NCBI GenBank assembly: GCA_047495785.1
Contig: JBLDXI010000017.1
Location: 992,001-1,056,000 of the forward strand
Source: Lepidodermella squamata
Lineage: Eukaryota > Animalia > Gastrotricha
Length of the DNA: 64,000 nucleotides
Direction: 5' to 3'
Shown here: positions 209 to 59,305 of the stretch, piece after piece
How the letters are laid out: the number at the start of each line of letters is the position of its first letter
Position numbering within the stretch: the stretch's first letter is position 1
Position numbers and translations under genes: made by a program
Notes under the pieces: generated by a model
The model's database searches: none
Seen by the model: only the letters and a program-made list of their open reading frames with translations
Told to the model about the DNA's origin: nothing

Positions 209-829
209 TTAGTTTTCGATTTCCTTAGTGAATCTGGCTAGTATTTGAGCCACTCTTGCTGGCCGAAAATCTGGCGATGAGAGGAACCTTCGCTCTAGAA
301 TTTGCGCGGTTTCTTAAGAGAAAAAACAGAAGATTTATCAACCAGGTACTTGAATGTTGTATATACCTTCTTCCAGCTGTTTCACGAAAGCTTGCTTGCG
401 TAGATTTCGAGTCCAAATGTAGAAAGCAGCGCCTTTTTGAACCTGCCTGCATTGATCTTCGTCGAAATCTATCGGGCAAGCCGCAGATGCGAAAAGGTTC
501 GGCAGATCCATTTTTGCTACAATAGACTTGGCAATAACTTTTATCAGTTCACGAATCTCGGCCAGCATTTTTTGCCGGTTTGAGTTGTAAGACGAAAACA
601 CAGCAGGGCGGTTGACCGAGTTTCTGCCTGATGTTTGCGGCGGCAGTGTATGATCCTGTAACTCATCTTCGAGAGCGTCTGGGATTGCTTTCGAAATTGC
701 AGCGTCGATTTTCGTGCGGAATTGTTTCCCGAATGTCAGTCGTGCTTCAACCGAACTTTCAAGAGCCGGAAATTCGCTGCAGGTCACGCACGCAAATGTC
801 GTGACTATTGCTATGATTGCTGCGAACAT
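209..829 (-). CDS. Secreted protein of an unrecognised C-x8-C family, copy 1 (2 exons: 829-367, 312-209; ~188 aa)
   Basis: Hydrophobic signal peptide MFAAIIAIVTTFACVTC. Shared core IAKSIVAKMDLPNLFASAACPIDFDEDQCRQ..AAFYIWTRNLRKQAFVKQLEE. A 54-nt phase-1 GT-AG intron splices in frame to ETAQILERRF..stop. Confidence 0.8.
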
Positions 830-2237
830 TATGAGGGTCAATGTCCCTATTAATCCCTACGAAAAAAAGTTAAATATAAATAATAATAAACTAGACCCAA
901 TGCGGGTTGATAGGAAATGAGTGGGGCAGTAAATTACAATAAATAATTCAGCTATCATCATTCAGCCGGGAACTCTTGAGGTTATACCCAATTTCCGTCC
1001 CATGTAAGCGACGGGGAACCTAAAAGTCCTGGTGAATGTGTGCCATCTATTCTAAATGTTTTGTTTGCTAACCGCGATTCTTCATCAAGCATTGAAGCTT
1101 TCCACTTCATTTAACTCAGATAATTGGCACAATTTTGTTGCGGAAATCGAATTTTACTTGTTATTAATTTGGATAATTTAGGGTGTGCTGGGTTAGTCTT
1201 TGAAAGTTTCTAAATTATCTATAACACGAAAAGGGTAAATATTTTCTAAAAATTAGATATATCTTATCGTCAGAAATTGTGTTTTTTTCTCAGAAAGGCT
1301 ATTTTTGTCATCGAACAAATTTGTTCAGCGGAAATGCATTTTTTGTCATGTTTTCAGGAAAAAGGTAATCGAATAATCATGCAGCTTCCTCGCAAATTTG
1401 CCGCTAATTTTGATGTGGGCGGGTATAAGATTTACTGAGGACTGCAAGGAAGGTGCTATCTCCAGCTGTTCCTAAGATCTTATAAGACCTATCAACACCT
1501 TTCACGAGTCCATCGAAAAATTTCGCAAGATCACGGACTCAATTGACTTAATTCTTCCGATAAAATGTCCGAAACTAGTTGAGGGAGAAATTTTTCATAA
1601 ATTTCGTCCTTCACATTTTATGAGGCTATTGAGGTTGGCTGATCTTCCTGTTTCCCAAAGTTTCAATAACATCGAAAGCATCTCCCATTTTTAAGAAGGA
1701 TAAACACATGCATAGGCTTAAAACTTGGGAATTTTTTGATATAAGTATAGGAGAAAAGCTGGCCAATAGTCATAAAAAAATGGATACGCCATGTTTCCTC
1801 GGATTTCCTAATCTCGCAAATTTTGAACGATGGCGGGAGCTCTCAATAGCCGTAAAAAAACGCACAAAATTATTGCTAGTAAGAGACAATGTACCTATAT
1901 AAATCTCAAAAACCAACCTGAGCAACAACATTGTCCTTTCGTGGCAGGAAATAGCGTTTGAGGATATTGAATTTTTAGCCGCGACATACCGTTAAAGACG
2001 GTGCAAACTTGATTTTCGTTATCAAGATGTTTTTTACTGGTAAACTTAAACGTATCGCTAATATTCTCTTTATTAAATTTTAATTCGCATTATAGTCAGG
2101 AAAAAACAAAATCGCCCTGCGTTTTTTTTTCGATCATGAGACAAAAAAAAGATGTTGATGTGAATTTCATAAAATATGCATGGAAATATTGACATTATTT
2201 TACACGAATTGTACCGATTTTAGGACATCATCAACAT

Positions 2238-2906
2238 TCATTCAAGTTCTCTCCTGTCTGCCGATCTTTTGTCTAAATTGTCGGCTCGATCGCTGGTCGT
2301 CGAAGATGCATCTAGAAGTGTCGACGAGTCAAAATTCGGCAGATTTAGCGGCGATTTTTCCTCGCTTCCTGATGAATTAATTTGACGTAGTAAATGCTCA
2401 AGTCTTCGTGCAGTTTCTAAAAGAAAGAAAAATCAGAAAAAAATAGTTAAAAAATCAGAAAAATTACGGTCTTCGAGCTGTTTAATCAAAGCTCTTTGCC
2501 GAAGATCGCGAAGCCATACGTAGAACGCGCCTTTGCTTTTGTATTGATGGCACATGTCCGGCGTGAATACATCCGGGCAAATGTTGGAGTTGAACAGCTT
2601 TGTCAAATCCATTCGCGACACCATTTGCCGCGCAATCGCGTAGATAAGTTGGCGAATCTGCTGCGGCGAGTAAGCTGTCCCATTCGATTGGCTGTCTGGG
2701 TTCAGGCTATCCTCACCCTGTTTACCGAATTGGCCGATCATAGTGTGCGCGATTCGGGCTAAATTAGCGTCATCTTCGCCCAGCGAGCCGAAATTAGCAC
2801 CTGTTCGCATGAAGCCAGCCGGACGGGCATAGACAGCGGCTATTATTGCTAGGCTAATGTACGAAAACATTGCTATGGCCAAATTCGAACGCAGTAATGA
2901 GACCAT
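2238..2906 (-). CDS. Secreted protein of an unrecognised C-x8-C family, copy 2 (exons 2906-2468, 2416-2238; ~205 aa)
   Basis: Signal peptide ending AVYA-RP. Core IARQMVSRMDLTKLFNSNICPDVFTPDMCHQYKSKGAFYVWLRDLRQRALIKQLED. A 51-nt intron at the same position and phase as copy 1; exon 2 reads QTARRLEHLL...DKRSADRRELE. Confidence 0.82.
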
Positions 2907-3687
2907 TATTCCCAAAAAATTGTCCTATGAAATTGCGCGTAAAGAAATTTAAATTGAATCAAGCCAAGTATAGATGTGAGTAATTTTACTATAATGCAAG
3001 CCACCTACTCTTGTATCGCATATCTCTGGTTAGATATAATACGAGCGCCCACAAAACCGTTGAACCGTATTGATTTGCTGTAATTATTGTTTAATTTAGC
3101 GTATTTATTATAAAGAAATATTTTATTAGATCCTAATCCCTGGAGCATCCCACGCTATTCTTGAATCATTCTAATAATCTAACGAATTATGTGACTGTAT
3201 AAATCAGAGAAAAAATATTTTTCTATGAATAACTGATTTAATATATAATATGAATTTCGCCCTGTCCGGGATTCAGGAGATTCAAGGAAGGCCTTTTATT
3301 CAAAACACAACCCTCGCGATTTATCAAAATTAATTGCGATTTATTCCAAGAAATTTTACGAAATCCGGTTCTTCTTGGAGAACTGCAATTTTTCCGCAAA
3401 TCCCAGTTGGGAATTGCGCAGGCGCGTGATCTATCACTTGCGGGCTGTGGGGGCGACAAAAAACATAATTTAACAATATTGCGCTGAAATCCAGCTGCTG
3501 ACATCTTCAAAAAGTTCATCTCAGAATTAACCATAATTTTACCAAAAAAATAACCTCAATAGGGAATACATGCAACAAGCTGTTTTATATTCCATAGGAA
3601 ATAGAACAAAAAACAATTGAATTAAATCTGGAAAATCACAAATATTCATAAGAAAAATTAGAAAAAAAGAGCTTAACAGCCGATATT

Positions 3688-4169
3688 CTACTCAAGTTTA
3701 TTTGTGATAGATTCAATAGGAATATTATGAAGTGAGTCCAGCTTTTCCAGATTATTAAGATTCGTTACCAGAGCCTTTTCCAACTTTCGCGCAGTTTCTG
3801 ATCATTGAAAAAAAATTGAATAAAATTTTAAAAAATATCGTATTAATTACCCTGTTCAAGCTGTTTAACCAGAGCTCGTTGCCGAAGTTCGCGAACCCAG
3901 ACGTAGAAAGCGCCATTGCTGTCTTGTCGGCACATTTCAGGCGTGAAAACTTCGGGACAAGCGTTTGAATTGAACAGCTTTTGCAGGTCCATTTTCGCGA
4001 CCATTTGCTTCGCTAATCGATTGATGACGCCGCGAAAATTCCCGAGAATCGCGGCATTATTGGCATTGCTCGTTGGCGCAGCAGCTACTGCTGCTGGGTT
4101 ACCTTCGACTTGAAGGAATATGGATGCCAACATGCAACATAATGGTACCCATGAGTGACCGATTTTCAT
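3688..4169 (-). CDS. Secreted protein of an unrecognised C-x8-C family, copy 3 (exons 4169-3851, 3797-3688; ~142 aa)
   Basis: Signal peptide ending QVEG-NP. Core LAKQMVAKMDLQKLFNSNACPEVFTPEMCRQDSNGAFYVWVRELRQRALVKQLEQ. A 53-nt intron at the same site; exon 2 reads ETARKLEKAL..stop. Confidence 0.82.
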
Positions 4170-7100
4170 CTCTTTCGATTTCAATTAAATAACATGATGA
4201 CTATAAAAATTTCAATAAAGTCTGAGAGTTGAAATTTTTAATTATGATGAAAAAATAGCGAAAATATCTAGACTTTTGCGCATTGTTTACCGGAAGTAAA
4301 AAGGGAGTGCCTAGAGAAATCGGATGTTTTCTCACAGGTAAATAGCTGTAAGACAATGCGCGGTTGCAAAATATGTGTACACACTCGGGTAGAAAATCTG
4401 CCATTTATAGAAATAAGATGTATCCTGAAAGGGTGTCGAACTTATCGAGAGTTCACAAATTTGCATTTTCTATGAGCGTGGGCGCGCGCTATTGTCGTGA
4501 AATACGATATATATTTTCAAATAAAAAAAACCACTAAACAGGTGGTTATCTAGTCCTCTCATAAAAGTGCGGTCTATATTTAGCTCAAATCCAATTTACA
4601 ACATAAATTTCATTTTAGTCTATAGCGGTACGATTTTATTAACTTTTCGTACTTCTTTTACAGGCGTAAAAAATCTAGAAAATAGATAAGTGGCTACCCT
4701 GACGTCTGATTGTCAAAAAAATGAGAAATAAAATTGTAGCGATGTCCATAACGTCGCCAACGCTAATTTCCAGTTTAAAAATTGAAATTATTTATTAAAA
4801 ATATCTAACCTATATATTCACGAAGTATCGTTAGTCAAATATTGATAAGGTGCGAGCGAAAAAAATAAGGAAAAAAAATAGAAATAATCACTCATAATAG
4901 TGCAGACTACTTAGGTAAATTCTGTCTGGGTAAATTTCTGGAATTGTTTGCTCCTCGCAAGGTATTTTTGTTAAAATTGGAAAAAAAACAAAGGTGTGTG
5001 CTCTGCGAGCAATTTATTGGGAAGCTATTTGGCCGATAAAAGGCGTGGTTTTTTTGGTTGCCTGCGACACTTTCGCACTTTAGCGACCTCCTCTTCCTCC
5101 TCCTCGGTGCGCGCACAGGGTGATCTAATGGCCCCGGTACGAAAAATCGAGAAAACAGTTTCTATGTGTCGTAGGCGATAGCTCGCTTATATAAGTGTAG
5201 CGAGGTGGAATTTAATAAAAATCCATGGACTGTACGTTTTTTTCCGAGCCTTGAAATTGTCAAATGAACTTGGAAAAATTTGGAACTGTGATTCGATGCG
5301 GTATTTAAGCATTTATTGCCTCCCACACCTTCACGGCAACAAAATACTTGGAAATTTTATTTGGTCTCAAGTGGCCGAATTACAGGTTTGAGTGGACAAA
5401 TTCGACAGGTTTCACGGTTTTATCAATGGCGTGTGAAAAAAGACATGGAATCACGTGCTGCTATCGGAACGATCGGCAATCGGTAAGCATCGCACGGTCA
5501 TTCAATTCAGGCTAAATCGTATTATTATCACACGCAATTTGCAGATAAATTCCTTTGAGCTCCCCTCGATTTTACGGTTTCATCCGCTAAGGCGTCATTA
5601 TTACTCCCTATTTTTAGGTCATATATATATATATAGGCGAGTGTAGGCGGTTTAAATCCTCGTGATTTTTTATTGCTAAATATTTTCTGTCCCATTAAAC
5701 ACAATCAATTGACGGCAATTATCACCAGACATTCAACGGCTATTAAATTGAACCCGGTGTTTTTTATTGAACGCGCAAATTATCGATGAAAGGACACGTT
5801 AAACGTAAAGCATTAAAAATCATTGAAGCGAACAGCTCTAATGGACTTGGCTGGTAATTATGCCGAACGGGGTCTATTGAAAGGTAGATAGCTATTCGGC
5901 GATTGAATGGGCGTTAATTTCAAGTCATTAAAGCAACAAATCGTTTAATGCCTTTGATGTTAGCCGCCGGTTTTTCGGTCATCAATAGAAAATTAGCAAG
6001 GAGTGGGCGTATTCAAGCATGACAGCACCACGCAGCCAGGACCCTGTAAAAATTTTTATTGCTGGAATAAATTCAAAAAAATCGAAAAAAATAATTTTGA
6101 CATTTGCTGAAATGTCACTGCTGAAAAGTCGTACAACCTTTTTTGAAAATATTTAATTTTGAATAAATAGTAAATTAATCTTATTATAATTTCTTTATTT
6201 CGCTTGAATGGAAACTAATCGGATACTTCAGCCAGGTCACGACTTCTCTTCATTTCACTTAAATTTTATAAATTAAATGATGAAAAAAAATTAAGGAGTT
6301 TTTTTTATAATAATCTTAAACTGGCTGTTAACCATTATCACCGTGTGCATCATTTAATACGCCGCTGGTGGTGACATTTATTTATATTGTTATCACATTA
6401 TTATCAGGCTTAACTTGGCGCCAAATTCACCGTAAATTATTGCATAGATAAAGAAGCGCGCATATATGCGGCATGTTTTCTTTCAAGTCGCGCGCGCGCG
6501 CCACTTATAAATGAAATCAAATTTAGTAGACACAGTTTACAAAACACGCACGCTTATGATAATCGTCCATAATCTTTCAAATTTTTAATTCTCAGGTATC
6601 ATATCGTCATCATTAAAATAGACGCGCGCACGCGCTAAATAGCGTTAATGATGTCAAAACATGTACATTTTATTGCGCTCTTTTTTATTGCCCGCGGGCG
6701 CAAAGCTGATAAATAACAATATCATATACAGCCGTGCGCTCGAGTCAATGATAGAGATAATAAATTCGAAATAAACGACCGTCGAATGCAATAAAAGTGT
6801 AATAATTTTTAATGGCCATTTAGCTGCTGGTGGTGTTTAAATGACTACCAGTTTTATAAACACACACGTACACATTTTGGCGACTTGAAATGCGACAATT
6901 TGAAAACGTGTCTGCTGCGATCGTAAAAGTGTTTTTCATCATCATCACCATTATCTTTTTATTATTCGGTAAATTAACCGCGTCGTAAGAGCATGAAAAG
7001 AATTACAAAAATAAATTTAATGCGTGCCAGAAAAAATCGGTACAGTGAAGATCTGGAATAATAAGCCGGATAGATTTTATTCTCCGACGTGTCCGAATTT

Positions 7101-8747: not shown

Positions 8748-10381
<1,634 letters not shown>

Positions 10382-26821: not shown

Positions 26822-27391
26822 TCAATGGTGGCCATGACCGTGGTGACCAGGAGGGTCGAAGGTGTAGTGGGTGACAGTGGTTCGGCGATCTTCGGAAATA
26901 GGAAGACCATCAGTCCAGAATGGATATTGTTTTGGTTTGTAGGGCTTTGGCACCCTGAGAGGATTGAAGTAAACGGCAGCTCCGACAAGGCCGATAGCAG
27001 TAGCCATGAAACTGATCATGTACCACCAAGGGAGTGGCGGTTTAAAAGTAGGATTCCACAGAAATTCGACCATGAAATCTTGCATCCAATGCATTGGTTC
27101 ACCGTAGTTACGCTTTCGCGCAGGCATGTCCCAACGGTCATAATAATCACGAACAGCCATTCCGACAGGTGGGAGGTCTGGGTAATCGCCAAGACCTAAG
27201 CCATCATCGGCGAACGGCTTGTAGTCAGCGGGTACAAGGCCGTATTTCTTTGCAGCGGCAGCGTGTTCTTCGTCAGATTTCGGATAAGGTCCAGGCTTCC
27301 AGTCACGGTGCCAAGCTGAAGCCTGGCGGGCGATGAGGATCCGTGGCACGGCCAAGGATTTACGCGAAATAGCTTGCAACGCCAAGCTCAT
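26822..27391 (-). CDS. NDUFB8: NADH dehydrogenase (ubiquinone) 1 beta subcomplex subunit 8, single coding exon
   Basis: Mitochondrial presequence, then WHRDWKPGPYPKSDEEHAAAAKKYGL..DYKPFADDGLGLGDYPDLP, WDMPARKRNYGEPMH, a single TM segment and PKQYP. Confidence 0.95.
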   Translation of the reverse strand: MSLALQAISRKSLAVPRILIARQASAWHRDWKPGPYPKSDEEHAAAAKKYGLVPADYKPFADDGLGLGDYPDLPPVGMAVRDYYDRWDMPARKRNYGEPMHWMQDFMVEFLWNPTFKPPLPWWYMISFMATAIGLVGAAVYFNPLRVPKPYKPKQYPFWTDGLPISEDRRTTVTHYTFDPPGHHGHGHH

Positions 27392-28553: not shown

Positions 28554-30780
28554 AGCCAACAATTTTTTATTGCGGCATGTTATGGACGCGCAGCTTTTAG
28601 CCGAATTCAAGACTCTTGCAAAATCTCTGTTCGATTCAAATGAAAGGCAGTTCCTGCAGAAAACTATAACATCTTACAAAGATGATGAAGATTTTGAGCG
28701 GCTTCTTGAATCACTGAAGACGATAATTGTATCAGTTGATCAATGCCAAATTCTTCCATTCGTTAAACTATTCCTGCTACGAAAGCACCGCAATCTCGCC
28801 AAGCGATTATGCGAATCAGAATTTGTTACAGAAGATGAAAGGATTCATCAACGGGATGGCTCTAAAGTTATCGAACGAATGAACAGTGTACAACAGGAAT
28901 ATTCTCGCGCCTCATCGATCTCCAGTGGAAAGAAAAAGCATCTTCTTTCAGCCGTCATTGTTAGGAAAATGAATGAATCTCTGGGTATTGGCATTAGAGG
29001 CGGAATAGACTTTGGCTGTGGCATATTTGTAAGTGACGTTCAACCCGACTCTCCCGCCGCAAAAGCTGGCCTACAAGTCGGAGATCAAATTATTTTTGTC
29101 AACAACGTCAGTTTCGAATCAATCACAGCTAATGCAGCTGCTAGATTTCTGGCGTCTGCTTTCCCACCTCCTAATGCTAACAATGGTTCTCGGCTCAGAT
29201 TAGTATTCACCAGGACGGGAATGGTTCCCGCACATCGCACTAATCGTGAACGCATGGCTTGGAACGACGTCAGATCGGGAGCAACTGTTTTTGGTGTGTA
29301 TCAGTCTAATGACAACTCCCAGGCTCTTCATTTACCACCTCTGCCAGCTCATGTGGAAGCGACCGGTGGGCTGCAGGAATATGTTGTTAATTTTCACGTG
29401 ACGCTCAGCTTCGCAATAAGAGGCGGACGAGATTTCGGCCTGGGGATTTACATTTCAGCTGTCGGAAGCAAGGATTCTGACGCCGATCAATTGAGGCACG
29501 TTGAGCTCAAACCTGGCGATGAAATTGTTGCGGTAAATGGCAGGGAAATCCAGCCAATGCGCCACTCCCAAGCAGTTGATTTTTTGAGACAGCAGAAGCA
29601 TTTAGCACTGACTGTGAAGCATGTGGGAAAGTATCCGCTATTCAAAGAAATTTCTTCAGAGGTGACATGGATTGTCGCCAATCCAGATCCGAATAATCCG
29701 GCTCCCACTACAGCAACAAATAGCGTTAGGACGGAATTACCGTGGGAGACCGTGGTTACTGTCCGAAGGAATTTGCCCAACGCTAATGGCGACTATTCTA
29801 GTGCAAGAATGTTACCACAAAACAGTCAGCGCAGTCTATCGTTCAGCTTGGCAAAGAGCTCATCGGGAAGTTTGGTTATTGATGCAGCTAACACTCAACA
29901 CCACACCCGACAGCTGCAAAATACAGGCGGATCGCTGCGATCATCTTGGACAGCTTCGGCATCCGGAGGCTCTGGTAACGGCTCCGTTATTTCTCAACCG
30001 GCCAAAGATAGCTTTGTATTTCACTCAACTCGCCGCCGACCAGTTCAACCCGCCAGAACACCGATTTCGACTATTCATTTCGACGAGACGAACAACTCAT
30101 CGCCTTACTGTGACGCCTCTGATTTTCAGTTGCATTTGAAAGAAAGTGCGAGCAATTTGTCTGGTCTGCTGCAAAATCAATCGATGACCAGCTTTGACGC
30201 CGCAAACGCTCGCATTTCTAGACAATGCAGTAGTAATAATAACTACGATCACGTGATTTTCGGCGAAGATCAGCGCCAGCAAACTGGGCTTCCTCCACAT
30301 CCAAGACCGAGTGGTCAGCGTAGAAGTGGGAGCGAATATGAAATCAAGCCAAGTGCAGTTCGCTTTACAGAGGACTCACAAAACATCGAGGCTATAACTT
30401 CAAACGTGAGTTATATGAGAACTTGTCAAGAAATGGGTTTCAACCAGGAATCTGCGCTTCGTCCGCCTTCAGTCGCTGTAAAAGGAAAACATACAACTTT
30501 GATTAAACTACCGAAGCGACCTGATACGAGTTTGGGCCTTGGAGTTTCGGGCGGTGGAGATTCTCCCGATCAGTGCCTTAGAATTGATCACGCCTTACCT
30601 GATAGTATTGCTGGCGAAGCGGTGGCTAATGGTCTTCTCCAGCCTGGGTGCCTTTTATTGGCTGTAGATGGCCAGTCATTGGTCGGAGCTACTCACGAGG
30701 ATGCCGTTAGTTTGATACGGCGATGCTTCCGCGATGCCTCGAAACCGACTTTGAATTTGCTCATATCTACCAATGGCTGA
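28554..30780 (+). CDS. WHRN: Whirlin/PDZD7-like scaffold (harmonin-homology domain + PDZ1 + PDZ2 + C-terminal PDZ); 5' end uncertain
   Basis: HHD-like helix bundle LLAEFKTLAKSLF..QILPFVK; LGIGIRGGIDFGCGIFVS; FAIRGGRDFGLGIYIS; SLGLGVSGG..GATHEDAVSLIRRCF. Acceptor AG at 28552-28553. Confidence 0.8.
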
Positions 30781-36688: not shown

Positions 36689-39600
36689 CTATGAAAGGTG
36701 AAAAAATCTAGCTGCTAGAGAAGCTGTTACAACAACAAGTGGGTAGACGCGATTCGATACGGCTGCGTTCCTGTGAGACGTTAACCGACGCCATAAATCG
36801 GTTGATCTCTCGTAGAAATTGGTATCGATTGAGTCGATAGTGTCCAGGGAGGCGACGGATCCGGCTGAAAGGCGGTTATCATTGACAAAAGCCGGCTCTG
36901 TTACTGGCGGCCAGCTGCATGCATCTGGAAAAGATTTAAAAAGTTTGTAGAAAAATTCAATATTTTTTTTTAAATTTTAATGAATATTTTACCTTGAGGA
37001 TTGAAAGCAAAGCCGATGAATTCGTGGCGATCGTTTGATTTATTGCTGTTGAAACTGGCAGAATTCGGCGAACTGAAATTAACTTGACTACTCAACCAGC
37101 AGTTTGGATTCGGAATCAGCTTCGAAACAATCGAAGGTATCCCGTTATGTTGCAAAATCTACGAAAAAATAATTAGCAATTGCTAGAAAAAGCCGAAAAA
37201 AAACGTACAAAACAAGCGAGTGGTTCGCGTTTATCGCCCGTTGTAGGCACAACAGGGGCGAAAAGTAGGTTGTCGGTTACGTAATCTCGTCGCCATCGGT
37301 AGGCACACCGTTGCACGGCAAAAAATAGCGACAACTCAGGGTCACTTTCTGAGGAACACGTCGAGCCTTTCCTCGAGACTAAGTAGAAGAGCTCGTCATT
37401 TTTCCGAGTAATTTCTTCACGTTTTTTTGCCAGAGATTCGCATAGACGGACTAAGCATGGTCGACCTAGCACAGCCTCATAGTCGTTCGGCATTTTGATA
37501 GCTGATGTTTGAAGGTGGTGTGGGGCGATTTTGTGCCCGGATAAATACCCAGGCATGGCTATGGAAAGACATTCATGGGCGGATTGGCCCGAAAACACGC
37601 CGCTGTTGACCAATAGCACGCGGTGGTCTTCGTTATTGCCGGCGCAGACCGAACTCGGCGGACCGTGACCCGGTGACCCCAAAACCAGCTCAACCACGTG
37701 ACGATCTCGTTGGTAAAATTTAACGCACCGGTACGTTAATTTTGACTTGGTTTTTGGAGGTAGGGTAGTAACAGGCAAGGGCGGTTGCTGCCTTTGAGCT
37801 CGTTTCGCTGTTCCGGCTTCAAAGCCCAACCCTGTCGAATTTTTGTCGTTTCCTAAGAAATTCGAGCAGGTGAAGTCGTTCGGAACATTTCGCCGAATTT
37901 TCGCGGAATTATTGTGTTTCCCGTGAACGACTTGATAAACAGCCTGGTAAATCCGGCTCGTTGGGTCGCCGCCTATCTCAGGCTCAACGCAGCTAAGGTG
38001 GATTGAGGTTCGATGTCCCAAACCAGGGTGGTCATCGATGTGTAGCGTAAAACTAGACGAGCTTGTTGGGACAAGCTGGTAAGACGAAGCATCAGTCGAA
38101 AGCCAGTTTTTCGCCTGTAGAATGAAGCTAGGAAGATCACACTGTGAGTTGGAACCAGCCGGTACCAAGTTGGAACCCATGTATTCACGGTTATGTTTGG
38201 CGTTTTCTGGGCTTGTTAATCGAGAGGTTGAGGTAGAAGTTGGTATAGATGCGGTTGTAGTCTCGGCGACGAATTGAGTGAAGTGAAGCAGGTGGTATTT
38301 GGTGCCGGAATGAAGCCGACCGGTGTTTTGCTTCAAACTGACCCCATTTAGCTCAGAGCAATCGAAACCACTCGCAATCGCCATTGAAAATACCGAGCTG
38401 GAAAAGATAAGAAATATTCAAATCTTGCTAAAATTGTTCCAAAACAATGAAGACTTTTCATCCATTGAAAACAAAAAATTGAAATTAAAAATTTGACAAC
38501 TTTGAAAAATTCCTTTTGCGTCTAAATATTTGAGCCAAAAAATTCGAAAGTCCAGAACAGTATTCAAGGATCTTCAATTTCCGATTTTTATTTAATTTTC
38601 GCAATTTTTCGCAACAAATACCAAATGACCCTTGGCTACCTAGTATGTAAAAGCTCAATGTCTGGCTTCCTAGAATGGTGATATCGAAAAATCCCTGATT
38701 TTTAAATACCAAATAAAATAAGGGAAATCGATTTCAGTTCTGAAATTTTACCCGTAAACTACATTTTGTAAAATTTGAAAGTTTGAAATTTTTGAAAATT
38801 ATAGATCTGGAACCTTAAATTCTGAGTGCAACCCAATCTAAATTCCAATTTTTCAATCAATTTTAAATTCAATTTTACCTCATGTGGTGTTTTTTGGGCA
38901 TGTGATACGCCGCGCACCGAATTTGCGACGGTTGCGAGCTGAATTGAAGCCGAACAAAAGCGTAAACATGCTGATGTTCCGCAGCGATGATGCTAACAGT
39001 AGAATCAGCCTTCCAGCTCGCCAGGCATTCAAACGCAAAAGCGCCTCGAAATTTATCCGCCAAATCACAGGTAGATGCGCCGAGGGCTAAATTCACGCTT
39101 CGCTGGTCGACGCACGCCGTAGCACTCGAGGCGCAATTCGCGTATTCATACGCGACTAAATACTGGCCGAAATCGAACGGGCAAGGCGATTGGCGAACAT
39201 CGGATATTTTAAGCAGGGTCAACAGCGGCAAACTCGGGCTTAGCGCCGCGCAAACTCGATACAACGTATCAGCCCCGGCGTTATTCGGTGCGGCTAGGCA
39301 TTGCAAAGCCGTTGTCCGCATTTGAACGACAAATGGTGACGATTTCCGGTCGACGAAAAGGCACCGGTAACACCGTTCATGCTCGTTATTGTTATTAGAA
39401 TGCTCGATTAGGCTGAATTTCTGCGATGCGGCTGCGCATCGGCCAAACGGGCGGATGAAGCTGCCGCTGACGGATAGATTGAAATAGCCGCCGAATAGCT
39501 TCGAGCTGAAGCCGAGCCAAACAGCGTTGAGATTCGGTGGCAGCTGCGGTGTTGGCGTGACTTGAACAGGTGTTGTCTCGCTAGTAGCATCCTCCTCATC

Positions 39601-39801
39601 GAGCTCTTCATCCTCGTCGCCGCAAATCGGTATGAACGCATTACCAGCCTCGCTGAGGCGTTTTTGCCGAATTTTCACCAATTTGTTGTAAATCGCTGAT
39701 GAGCCATCGTTGCAAGAGGAGAGGGTGAGCACAACAGAGAGGAAAACGGCCACTATCAAAGCGGCCTTTGACAGACTCAACAAGTTTTCAAACGCTCCCA
39801 T
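36689..39801 (-). CDS. Secreted, probably GPI-anchored Cys-rich protein resembling the invertebrate DUF7042/7043/7044 family (exons 39801-38879, 38397-37209, 37158-36993, 36924-36689; ~837 aa)
   Basis: Signal peptide; CYRCL, SPCPF, FECLASW, IRCAAY and YRCVKFYQR..VVEL motifs; C-terminus RNAAVSNRVYPLVVVTASLAARFFHLS. Exons join in frame. Family assignment is from memory only. Confidence 0.65.
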
Positions 39802-42431
39802 TTTGACGAAAATCGCACGAATAAAAATGTCATGTTTAAACGTTGAATATAACAAAAAAATGTACCTAAAAAATAACAAAAAATATTATTTTTAGGAAGC
39901 CGGTCCCTTTTGCGAAAAAATTTGGGAAGAAAGTTTTATAGCAAAATTTTAAGAAATAAAATGTGAAACTTCGCTGGTTCAGATCTGAATAATGAGAAGC
40001 GAGACTTCTTGTGTTATTTTAGTTTTAATCTATCAACAAAGGAAACGATTAGCGTCTTTTGGCTCGCAAGTTAGTTGGCTTTGTTGTTTGTTTTAGAACA
40101 GGCGAACAGGGCACACCTTTTGGCCGAGACGCGCGTGTTAAGCCGGGTGTAATATAATAATCGTATAATAAATTAGTTTTTACCGCGTGAGCGCGCGCTC
40201 TAGGGCAATAAGCTACATTTCGCGCAAGCGCGCGCGCGCGTGAGGCGATGCGATTTTCAAATACAAGTATCGCGAGTACATCAACACGCTTGCTAGGCAG
40301 TAACAAGAACAACAACAAGGTAGCAACCTTATATTTACACAACACCATACCACGTTCTATATGCAGGGTGAATATAATAATAATAATAAAACAAAACAAA
40401 CGCTTGTGGGCAGGATATATCGTGATATCGTTTGTCGCACCCTGCAGCTTTTAACCTGGTGCTGTGTTGAATCGATAAAATTAATTTTGCCCGGTGTATA
40501 ATTTATTTAATAAATAAAATGCGACTCGCTTATCTAGATAATATAAGTCTGGCGCGCTATTATTTATAATTATCAGCCGGCTGATTAGCGTTTTTGGCTG
40601 AATGATGCTCGGCCGGTCATCAGCGAATGTAATGTATAACGGTTGACTCTTTAAATAAAAGTCGCGCGCCAGCCCGCCGAGGCGTACCAAAATGACAGTT
40701 TCTAAATACGCATCTTTTCACACGCGCGCACTCGACAGGGTTGGTATATTATCGCCTAATAATAGTAATATAATAATGTTCAGTGGCAGTAGCATAATAA
40801 ACTGGGTGTGGTTATTAGTGTTAGTAGTATTTTTGTTCTCTCCTCTACTACTTCGCCTCGCCCCTTGTCAACAAGAAGTAAGAACAGAACGAGGCGCGCG
40901 AAAAGATGCGACGGCATGGTAATAATGACAGTAATAATATAATATAGCCCGTATTGTACTACTACTACCCAGAGCTGTAAACAACAACAACAATAACAAC
41001 AGCGCGATGTCAGTCAGCACATCACATTTTACGTCGCCTTGTCAAGCCAGCTTAATAATATCGCCATTTTGCGAGGCGCGCGTTGATTATCTATATATAT
41101 ATATGTTAGATGTATTACTAATAATGTGACGGATGAATAAAAATGAGAAGCGCGTTGATGTCCCATCGTCTCCGCGCGGCATAATAATGAACGCTCACTC
41201 CCTGTCACTCGTGTCACTCACTCACTCACGGCGATTATTTTTCGCGAGCAACTTTTCAAAAATCTAATGAGCCCAGCCGGGTGAGAAAAGTCACATTATT
41301 AAAAACAATGGCCAAATTTTTTCAATAAAATAATATCAATCGCGCGTAAAAATAAAAATAATACATCCACGGGCGGTGATGTAGAACAACAATAGCCTAG
41401 GTTAATCTAGAAAAACTACCTTTTTCTAATGCATGTTGTTGAAGAAACAAACAAACAAAAATATATCTATATCCTTAGCTTATTTTTCTCATCGATGTCC
41501 GTTCGATATGCGTGGCTGGTTTGTTAAGGCGGCGCATTAGGCGATTGTGCTGAAATGTGCCTGCCAATTTGCCGTACGGAGTGCTGTAATAAAAATCACC
41601 ACACCGAGTGATGGACGCGTCGATGGATGTATATCGCCCGGGCCAGGTCGAATATATCTATACTTGTGGGTATATACGCGGCAATATATTTCGTATAAAT
41701 AATCAATTAGTTGTGGCTCGTGTTTTCCTGCCCGACTGCGTGTAAGAGAGGCTAGCAAGCGGGCAGTCTGTAAAACACTCTTCGGGTACAGCAGCTGTTC
41801 GAAAACGCGCACACTCGACCCAAAAACCCGTTTATCGTCGAAGGCAGATCTCATATTATATACAACGTTTTTAAATTACATGCATTTTACATTGTGTTTA
41901 TACGCTCGTTTGGGCTGGGGCTATATTATGAAATTATGGCAACTAATATAACAATTGCGCATAATTGCTGTAATAATAATATATTTTTATTACGCGCTTA
42001 GTGCGCGCGCGTGTTTAAAAGCGCGCATGCGGCTACTTAAGGGCGGCGGGGTGAGGCCATTCGTCCGAGCGCGCCTCATCACTACAATCAGCACGAACAC
42101 TTCAGTAGTCGGCGTCTTTGATATACACCGGATATCGGCGTGAGGAGGATATTTCCTTTCACCAGCTGAAAGCTGAAATCATAATTGCGATTTAACAAGG
42201 CGGCTGAATAAAATCGATCGAATTCACAGTGGCAGGCGTAACAACGGTTAACACGTCGTGCGTTAAGACTTGGCTTCATTTCACCTACGACAGACACGTG
42301 TCTTCGCGGCCAATTAGCGCCTAGGTGACCGCACTTTCAACTTCCGCCCTTGTCAATATTTTTGTGTTAAGGTGACATCACGCAAATCTAGGTAGATCTT
42401 GTGAATAATTAATTCATACAGCGTCTTTTAT

Positions 42432-57532: not shown

Positions 57533-59305
57533 ATGATTTTTATGGTAGCATTCCTTGTCATTCTTAATTGTCAGCTATTAGAGGACCTAGCTAATAGCTT
57601 TGCAAATTTATTTAATGATGATGGTGGCGATGATGCGCCTCGGCAGTCGCAAAAAGTGTTGCGACGCGCGTGGACCATGGAACAGCGGCAGCGCATACTG
57701 AAGCGAGTGGCGGAAACCGGAAACATAAGCGCGACAGCTCGTGAGTTCGGTTGTGACCCAAAACAAATACGCAACTGGAGAGCCACTGGAGGCGAAGACC
57801 GCACGCTAAGTCCAGACCGTAAGAGGCGGAAGGGTGCTGGACGTAAGCCGATTAGCAGTGACGCAGAGCACGCCGTTCACGACTGGATTACGAACATGAG
57901 ACACGGTAAACGGCGTGTTACGCGCGCGATGGTGATGGCCAAATTCAAAGAAGTGTGTAGCGAGCTGAAAGTGGTATGCCGAGCGTCTCCTGGCTGGCTC
58001 TGGCGGTTTGTTAAACGCTTTAACTACTCGCTCCGCCGCCGCACAACCGTTTGCCAAAAACTGCCTTCATCTTTTAAATATTTGATTGCCGATTTTATTC
58101 TGTACGTTCGCCTGATGTGGCAATTACGAAAGTATGAAGCGAGTAATGTTTACGCCTGCGATGAAACCTGCATTTGGTTAGACGCGGTCGGTAATACCAC
58201 TTTGGAAACAAAAGGCGTTAAAGAAGTCGCTATTCTGTCTACTGGGCATGATAAACAGCGAATTACCGTCATGCTGACCGCCTCGGCAAACGGCAAGAAG
58301 CTACGGCCCTGTGTCCTCATCCCGCGAAACAAACCCATTCCTGAGCTCGATCGCCGATTCGGCTCCAAACTCATCATTTTATATGAAGGTATAATTTAAA
58401 ATTTAAAATTAAAATTGAAATTTAAAATTAAAATTTAAAATTTAAAATTAAAATTGAAATTTAAAATTAAAATTGAAATTTAAAATAAATTGAAATTTAA
58501 TTAAATTTAAATAGGATCAGTTTGGTTCGATGACGCTGTTACTGCGAAATACATCAATCGTACGTTCGGCACGGTTTTCGGTGCTAATATCAGCAAACCA
58601 CGCTTACTCGTTTGGGATTCGTTTCGTTGCCATGTTAGTGAGGCGACAACTACTCTTCTACGATCGCTTAAGTTCGACACAGCCATTATTCCTGGGGGCA
58701 CGACTAAGTACATCCAGGTCCCTGATGTTTGCTGGAACAAGCCGTTTAAACAGAAAATTTGCGAACTCTATGACCTATGGATGTTGGCGCCCGAGCGGGA
58801 AACTGAACTTACCCGAGGTGGAAACCCGAAGCCGCCTTCGTACGAAACTGTGTGTAGCTGGATCGTGCAGGCTTGGGAATCGATTGACACCAGCCTCATC
58901 GAGGCTTCCTTCAAAATCTGTGGATTGGGAAATGCTGCCGATGGGTCCCAAGACCATGTCATTTCTTGCCTGAAGCCAGGAAAGCCGTGCGAGGAAGCTA
59001 TGGCGATTTTGAAGGAGGAAAATCGGAAACCGGTAGTGCCCAAATACAGCGTTGGCTGGGAAACTGTTGCTGAGCACGTCATTCCGCCTTCTATTCCCAG
59101 AGTTCGCCGCGAAGCGAAAAAGCCCGAAATGAAGAGAGCCGCCTCAGCACCGAACTCCTCATCAATTTTGAAATTTTTCGGCCCGAAAACGACTTCTAGT
59201 CAACCTCAACAGCAACCTGAACCCGAGGAAGTGCCTGAAATCGAAGACGAGGAGAGCGTTTACGACGAAGACGACGCGGAACTTATTTACAATGATGACA
59301 TCTGA
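57533..59305 (+). CDS. Pogo-family transposase, HTH + CENP-B HTH + DDE_1 (exons 57533-58388, 58515-59305)
   Basis: NISATAREFG..QIRNWR, GAGRKP, ASPGWLWRF, NVYACDET, LLVWDSFRCH, IPGGTTKYIQVPDV with 35 residues between D2 and D3. Open frame after splicing. Confidence 0.9.
58389..58514 (+). repeat. AT-rich minisatellite forming the transposase intron
   Basis: GT...AG, 126 nt, built of (AAATTTAAAATTAAAATTG)-like units. Confidence 0.85.

Follow-up and report, generated by a model that had tools for sequence, protein, structure and literature searches.

A tandem array of small, predicted secreted two-cysteine helical proteins in the gastrotrich Lepidodermella squamata is one clade of a large lineage-restricted superfamily

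What kind of protein is encoded by three short tandem genes at one end of a stretch of the Lepidodermella squamata genome, and is it a precursor cut into peptides or a protein that works as it is folded? The stretch analysed here (hereafter the window) comprises 64,000 nucleotides of GenBank assembly GCA_047495785.1, contig JBLDXI010000017.1, positions 992,001 to 1,056,000 (G000:C17:992001-1056000 in our notation). The three genes, named F, G and H, correspond to minus-strand open reading frames (ORFs) at 338-841, 2433-2915 and 3843-4184 of the window. An earlier note on this DNA had placed them at 209-4169, which is exact, as 209 is the last base of the stop codon of F and 4169 the A of the start codon of H. 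Our analysis shows that the eight-gene array to which they belong is one well-supported clade of a larger lineage-restricted superfamily, and it points, with moderate confidence, to proteins that act as intact folded extracellular units, i.e., disulfide-pinned helical hairpins working through protein-protein contacts.

The three proteins share a conserved block that aligns over the last ~71 codons of exon 1 and retains 30 invariant columns, including C-P-x7-C (equivalent to C-x8-C), AFY.W and KQLE, in agreement with the ~70-residue C-x8-C block described in the earlier note. Residues C35, C44, F53 and W56 are invariant across 26 family sequences, and the mature part of exon 1 of each gene holds exactly two cysteines, all other cysteines lying within the leader. 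A hydrophobic core (mean Kyte-Doolittle value of 2.2-3.1 over 10 residues) accompanied by plausible -3/-1 sites was found within the first 30 residues in eight of the eight array genes, as would be expected of the signal peptides claimed for the three tandem genes. The stretch between leader and domain, earlier described as an unrelated, variable pro-like region, indeed cannot be aligned among the paralogs, and its modelled predicted local distance difference test score (pLDDT) is below 50; here, as in all searches and both structure models of this study, exon 1 or exon 2 was used singly. The domain is basic in seven of the eight array genes, with an isoelectric point (pI) of 8.7-9.8, and acidic in paralog D (pI 5.4).

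Exon 1 of F, G and H ends one base past KQLE[E/D/Q], at a GT donor, and the frame is regained at an AG acceptor 51-54 nt downstream, giving (E/Q)-T-A-[R/Q]-x-L-E. The intron therefore interrupts the same codon in all three genes, with canonical splice sites and identical position and phase, as the earlier note had it; the intron sequences themselves differ. The same phase-1 position is occupied in all eight array genes and in more distant paralogs on contigs C12 and C19 (12 paralogs). Exon 2 lengthens the last helix by about 10 residues and then runs into unrelated tails of 33 (F), 58 (G) and 35 (H) codons, which end in ...IEN, ...RELE and ...NKLE, respectively; the tail of G is acidic and Ser/Thr-rich, and exon 2 of H, a gene with a short Ala/Asn linker, carries leucines at heptad-like spacing. 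Conservation crosses the intron into exon 2. Because the helices on both sides of the C-x8-C loop are conserved, the selected unit is, judged from the alignment, the whole ~82-residue domain rather than an excised peptide.

Searching all six frames of this animal's genome (121.2 Mb, 151 contigs) revealed that F, G and H form the right end of an eight-gene minus-strand tandem array (genes A to H) at C17:984.7-996.1 kb, with five further copies at C17:984.7-990.8 kb, left of the window, where more copies had been guessed to lie. The "triplet" of the earlier note is thus real as to its three genes and an understatement as to its setting, an eight-gene array within a superfamily of at least about 130 loci. 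As the profile was widened twice, using members inspected individually, the number of loci at E-value ≤0.01 rose from 21 to 28 and then to at least 134 (217 candidates, 150 of which were scored); the loci form numerous tandem clusters, spread over at least 20 contigs. Seven of the eight far matches fetched had the same plan (helix, C-x8-C, F-Y-x-W-A-x-x-L-A-R), and hhalign joined the array alignment to distant members with a probability of 95.6% (E-value 1.3e-8, 30 columns), so that F, G and H can be placed at the edge of a single clade within a very large family. The array and the distant members have in common the signal peptide, helix, C-x8-C loop, F-Y-x-W helix, two exons and tandem clusters. 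The array clade is set apart by a proline after the first cysteine, an M-D-L motif in helix 1, a helix reading W-L-R-E-L-R...K-Q-L-E where the distant group has W-A-x-x-L-A-R, and the helix extension (E/Q)-T-A-R-x-L-E in exon 2.

Relatives outside this genome were sought with the domain profile in HMMER against 1.84 billion representative proteins, which returned 20 matches at E-value ≤0.001, 18 of them small proteins from ENA metagenome assemblies. The matches P0011 and P0020 (Saprospiraceae), giant bacterial repeat proteins whose similarity consists of numerous short repeated segments, were set aside as spurious. The protein P0001 is the counterpart of gene H in an environmental relative, with 81% identity over the domain, and on its contig an intron of 133 nt occupies the same phase-1 position, with E-T-A-R-K-L after it; two independent metagenome assemblies contain such an intron-bearing counterpart. 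When gene G or the eight-gene alignment was used for word searches, P0001 was the sole family match, and no relatives were found in Joint Genome Institute (JGI) metagenomes. The proteins P0007 and P0003 stand in tandem on a 49 kb metagenome contig, adjoining TEAD and formin genes whose homologues in the L. squamata genome (89% and 71% identity, respectively) lie on C17 at a distance of 290-370 kb from the array. Homologues of the C12 paralogs occur on a second metagenome contig, with P0004 grouping with the L. squamata paralog I, and P0034 and P0019 with the copy at C12:527 kb. Given these TEAD and formin neighbours and the C12-type homologues on the second contig, the metagenome relatives are, by their genomic context, other animals of the same lineage. 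In a maximum-likelihood tree genes A-H and P0001, P0002, P0003 and P0007 fell in one clade (support 96/91), hence the array subfamily is older than the split of these animals. The proposal of a lineage-specific family of secreted effectors is thus borne out as to lineage restriction and the small, secreted nature of the proteins; the prohormone reading attached to it is not.

Pairwise Nei-Gojobori comparisons over the domain gave proportions of nonsynonymous differences (pN) of 0.17-0.47 against proportions of synonymous differences (pS) of 0.47-0.87, with silent sites mostly saturated. Gene H and P0001 differ by pN 0.17 and pS 0.83, and the youngest pair, G and H, has a ratio of nonsynonymous to synonymous substitution rates (dN/dS) of 0.41. 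Since the domain has been kept while silent sites became saturated, the array genes are evidently under purifying selection. Together with the frames, splice sites and stop codons, which are intact in all eight genes, these values constitute strong sequence evidence that F, G and H are intact functional protein-coding genes.

The exon 1 part of the domain was modelled with AlphaFold2 on a 13-sequence alignment, giving a pLDDT of 79 and a predicted template modelling score (pTM) of 0.58. Helices were predicted at residues 6-22, 26-30, 41-48 and 52-70, with Cys35 in a loop and Cys44 in a short helix. Foldseek comparison of this model with the PDB returned nothing better than an E-value of 3.5, and VIA-align against 48,161 chains gave a top Z of 4.0; the matches of both were generic helical hairpins. 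Pfam scans of the three exon-1 proteins and 26 family members reached at best 12-13 bits against cut-offs of 28-34, and no Pfam family was matched by more than one of the 26 members, as expected of sub-threshold noise. A PDB sequence profile search yielded nothing significant, its best match, SNF5 at E-value 0.006, being judged due to chance, and ESM Atlas scores did not exceed 0.80, indicating low recognition. The search of 1.84 billion proteins was likewise devoid of characterized matches. Hence the statement that the proteins belong to no recognised family was upheld by the profile searches and by AlphaFold combined with Foldseek, and no family match was found in libraries, structures or the searchable literature.

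As conservation covers both long helices and no processing site, and as the last helix is hydrophobic on all faces, the proteins probably work extracellularly as intact folded units. Each protein would enter the secretory pathway by way of its signal peptide, the variable linker that comes next would remain disordered, and the ~82-residue domain, spanning the phase-1 intron, would fold into a helical hairpin whose connecting loop is pinned by a single predicted disulfide between the two cysteines. The last helix might be buried against helix 1 and a partner, be it a second copy (forming a four-helix bundle), a receptor or a matrix component. Specificity would differ from paralog to paralog through the variable linkers and tails, and the proteins would not be cut into peptides. 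Small secreted helical dimers encoded in large tandem arrays are familiar from the secretoglobins and androgen-binding proteins of mammals. The gastrotrich proteins resemble them in having a secreted helical domain of ~70-80 residues with a (predicted) stabilising disulfide, in their tandem arrays and in a possible dimer; they differ in helix count, cysteine placement and phylum and match them in neither sequence nor structure. The proteins may serve as ligands, as components of matrix, cuticle or egg, or in defence.

Several points weigh against this interpretation. The signal peptides were called by hydrophobicity and the -3/-1 rule only, and the domain model, of exon 1 only, is of moderate confidence. 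The disulfide is deduced from the two invariant cysteines, and oligomerisation and partner binding from residue distribution alone. Profile drift on widening is conceivable; the far matches nonetheless have C, C, F and W at the invariant positions. No transcript-derived proteins for F, G or H came up in word searches of a public collection that does not show the proteins of this species itself, and nothing was on record for the exact sequences of NDUFB8 or of the read-through ORFs of G and H. NDUFB8, an apparently single-exon gene at 26822-27391 (-) of the window (Pfam E-value 5e-32), served as a positive control, and its best public match was 66% identical, on an ENA metagenome contig; as this housekeeping gene is also without a near-identical entry, the transcript blank is uninformative.

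Among other roles, host defence has to be considered for an animal that feeds among bacteria: small, secreted proteins with a predicted disulfide, encoded in many tandem clusters and with basic domains in seven of the eight array genes, could be cationic helical antimicrobial or membrane-active proteins directed against bacteria or fungi and diversified by tandem duplication. We consider this unlikely. The hydrophobic moment of helix 3 is 0.04-0.15, lower than in most shuffles of its own residues, with hydrophobic residues facing several sides, and helix 3 was accordingly rejected as an amphipathic membrane-active helix; helix 1, at 0.19-0.39, is no more than moderately amphipathic. The acidic paralog D also argues against defence, as does a domain under purifying selection with saturated silent sites in place of rapid turnover. 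Nor is there a likeness to a defence fold, saposin-like or other. Saposin-like proteins such as the caenopores of nematodes are comparable as small, secreted, helical and disulfide-bonded (predicted here) products of multigene families in small bacterivorous animals, but saposin folds have six cysteines and three disulfides where the array proteins have two cysteines, the best saposin-like row in Foldseek had an E-value of 8.5 and a template modelling (TM) score of 0.24, and Pfam gave no match.

The same distribution of hydrophobic residues over several faces of helix 3 fits self-assembly, and a large secreted family in clusters, with low-complexity linkers and tails, might supply cuticle or scale, egg-shell or adhesive-gland components that assemble through their helices. 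Such structural secretions are no likelier than a defensive role, given that the domain is free of repeats and compositional bias and that a small, compact, well-conserved fold with one predicted disulfide is unlike typical matrix proteins. A further possibility, which we hold to be quite improbable, is that the superfamily comprises phylum-specific secreted ligands whose hairpins pair into four-helix bundles of the cytokine or hormone kind, each with its own receptor, the tightly conserved H-type protein providing a core signal and the array a diversified set.

The prohormone or neuropeptide reading, by which leader and pro-region are removed and convertases release either a ring-plus-helix peptide, as in calcitonin and calcitonin gene-related peptide (CGRP), or peptides from the tail, appears very unlikely. 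It would account for precursors that are small and secreted and that combine a variable "pro" region with a two-cysteine ring and a helix behind it, for the tight conservation of gene H with its environmental counterpart, and for the pairs RR, RK and KR in the tails of F, G and H. The presence of these pairs, as stated in the earlier note, was confirmed; none of them, however, is maintained as a dibasic site when the eight paralogs are compared. What follows T-A in exon 2, within the helix, is RR, RK, RN, RA, QI or IK, depending on the paralog. Neither ahead of the domain nor in exon 2 does the alignment have a column that is dibasic in the majority of paralogs, F, G and H have no dibasic site between linker and domain, and their tails contain neither a Gly-Lys/Arg amidation motif nor internal peptide repeats. 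With no conserved processing site at either edge of the ring-helix unit and no Gly-basic amidation signal, the prohormone model is not supported; the helices on either side of the ring are equally conserved, and more than 100 paralogs would be unusual for a hormone family. Calcitonin and CGRP precursors are secreted proteins with a short two-cysteine ring of 4-5 intervening residues followed by a helix, and the array proteins likewise have such a ring directly before a helix. Their ring has 8 intervening residues and does not lie at a processed N-terminus, and they differ further in the conserved helix before the ring, in the lack of conserved dibasic flanks and of an amidation signal, and in having no Pfam match.

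It is exceedingly improbable that chance ORFs, pseudogenes or an assembly artefact account for F, G and H. Only the missing transcripts speak for this reading, a blank made uninformative by the NDUFB8 control, and it is already contradicted by the selection and conservation results: all eight frames are open, the canonical splice sites fall at a single conserved position with exon 2 in frame, pN is far below pS, and two independent metagenome assemblies hold a counterpart that shares the intron.

Proteins of this kind, lineage-restricted, tandemly expanded, small, secreted and stabilised by a (predicted) disulfide, in a poorly sampled phylum, are familiar. Poorly sampled animals commonly have orphan secreted families, and the present one reveals no new mechanism; its value is descriptive. 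Gastrotrichs are a barely studied phylum, and a published gastrotrich genome paper (PMC11660948) contains no mention of "secreted" or "gene families". With more than 100 secreted mini-proteins of unmatched fold, the family is probably a major element in the animal's dealings with its surroundings, be it surface, glue, egg, defence or signalling, and offers a candidate gene set for localisation and knock-down. New are the extent of the eight-gene array, its status as a distinct clade (marked by the proline after the first cysteine, M-D-L and the K-Q-L-E/E-T-A helix), the conserved counterpart of gene H, and the negative tests for prohormone processing and amphipathicity.

The coordinates of the three genes are collected in Table 1.

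Table 1. Exons, introns and domains of genes F, G and H, in positions of the window.
Feature	Position	Strand	Description
Gene F exon 1	367..829	-	ATG 827-829; signal-peptide-like start; acidic unalignable linker
Gene F domain	368-580	-	last 71 codons of exon 1; 367 is the first base of the split codon
Gene F intron	313..366	-	54 nt, phase 1, GT..AG
Gene F exon 2	209..312	-	completes the split codon (E), TAQILERR..., 33 codons; stop 209-211
Gene G exon 1	2468..2906	-	ATG 2904-2906; signal-peptide-like start; linker; domain 2469-2681
Gene G intron	2417..2467	-	51 nt, phase 1, GT..AG
Gene G exon 2	2238..2416	-	split codon (Q), TARRLEHL...; stop 2238-2240
Gene H exon 1	3851..4169	-	ATG 4167-4169; signal-peptide-like start; domain 3852-4061
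Gene H intron	3798..3850	-	53 nt, phase 1, GT..AG
Gene H exon 2	3688..3797	-	split codon (E), TARKLEKAL..., 35 codons; stop 3688-3690

The intron is not universal in the superfamily. Its conserved position is read through, with the helix in frame, in P0007 (L036:2155-2649), in the copy at G000:C12:~527.5-528.0 kb, and in P0034 and P0019; because these members read straight through, the intron must have been lost or gained within the family. In a paralog on C19 (2688306-2688440, 2689301-2689360) the domain is seemingly split by an extra intron of ~860 nt between the C-x8-C loop and the F-Y-x-W helix.

Several start codons are preceded, 15-40 nt upstream of the ATG, by pyrimidine-rich sites resembling splice acceptors (...TAG/...CAG), in the window at 830-870 (F) and 2907-2935 (G) and also in array genes D and E, an arrangement that would fit spliced-leader trans-splicing. 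No common promoter motif was seen upstream of the eight array start codons.

Elsewhere in the window, ORFs with Pfam matches include a homeodomain protein at 9238-10023 (-), a multi-PDZ protein at 28570-30780 (+), a DUF7042/7043/7044 protein at 37173-39879 (-) and the DNA-binding region of a Tc5/pogo-type transposase at 57533-58399 (+). At the other end of the array, ~120 nt downstream of the stop codon of its leftmost gene A, a 202-bp element bounded by perfect terminal inverted repeats of 37 nt occupies C17:984327-984528. At least 15 full-length copies of this element, 91-100% identical and two of them 100% identical, are spread over many contigs, and it looks like a recently active miniature inverted-repeat transposable element.

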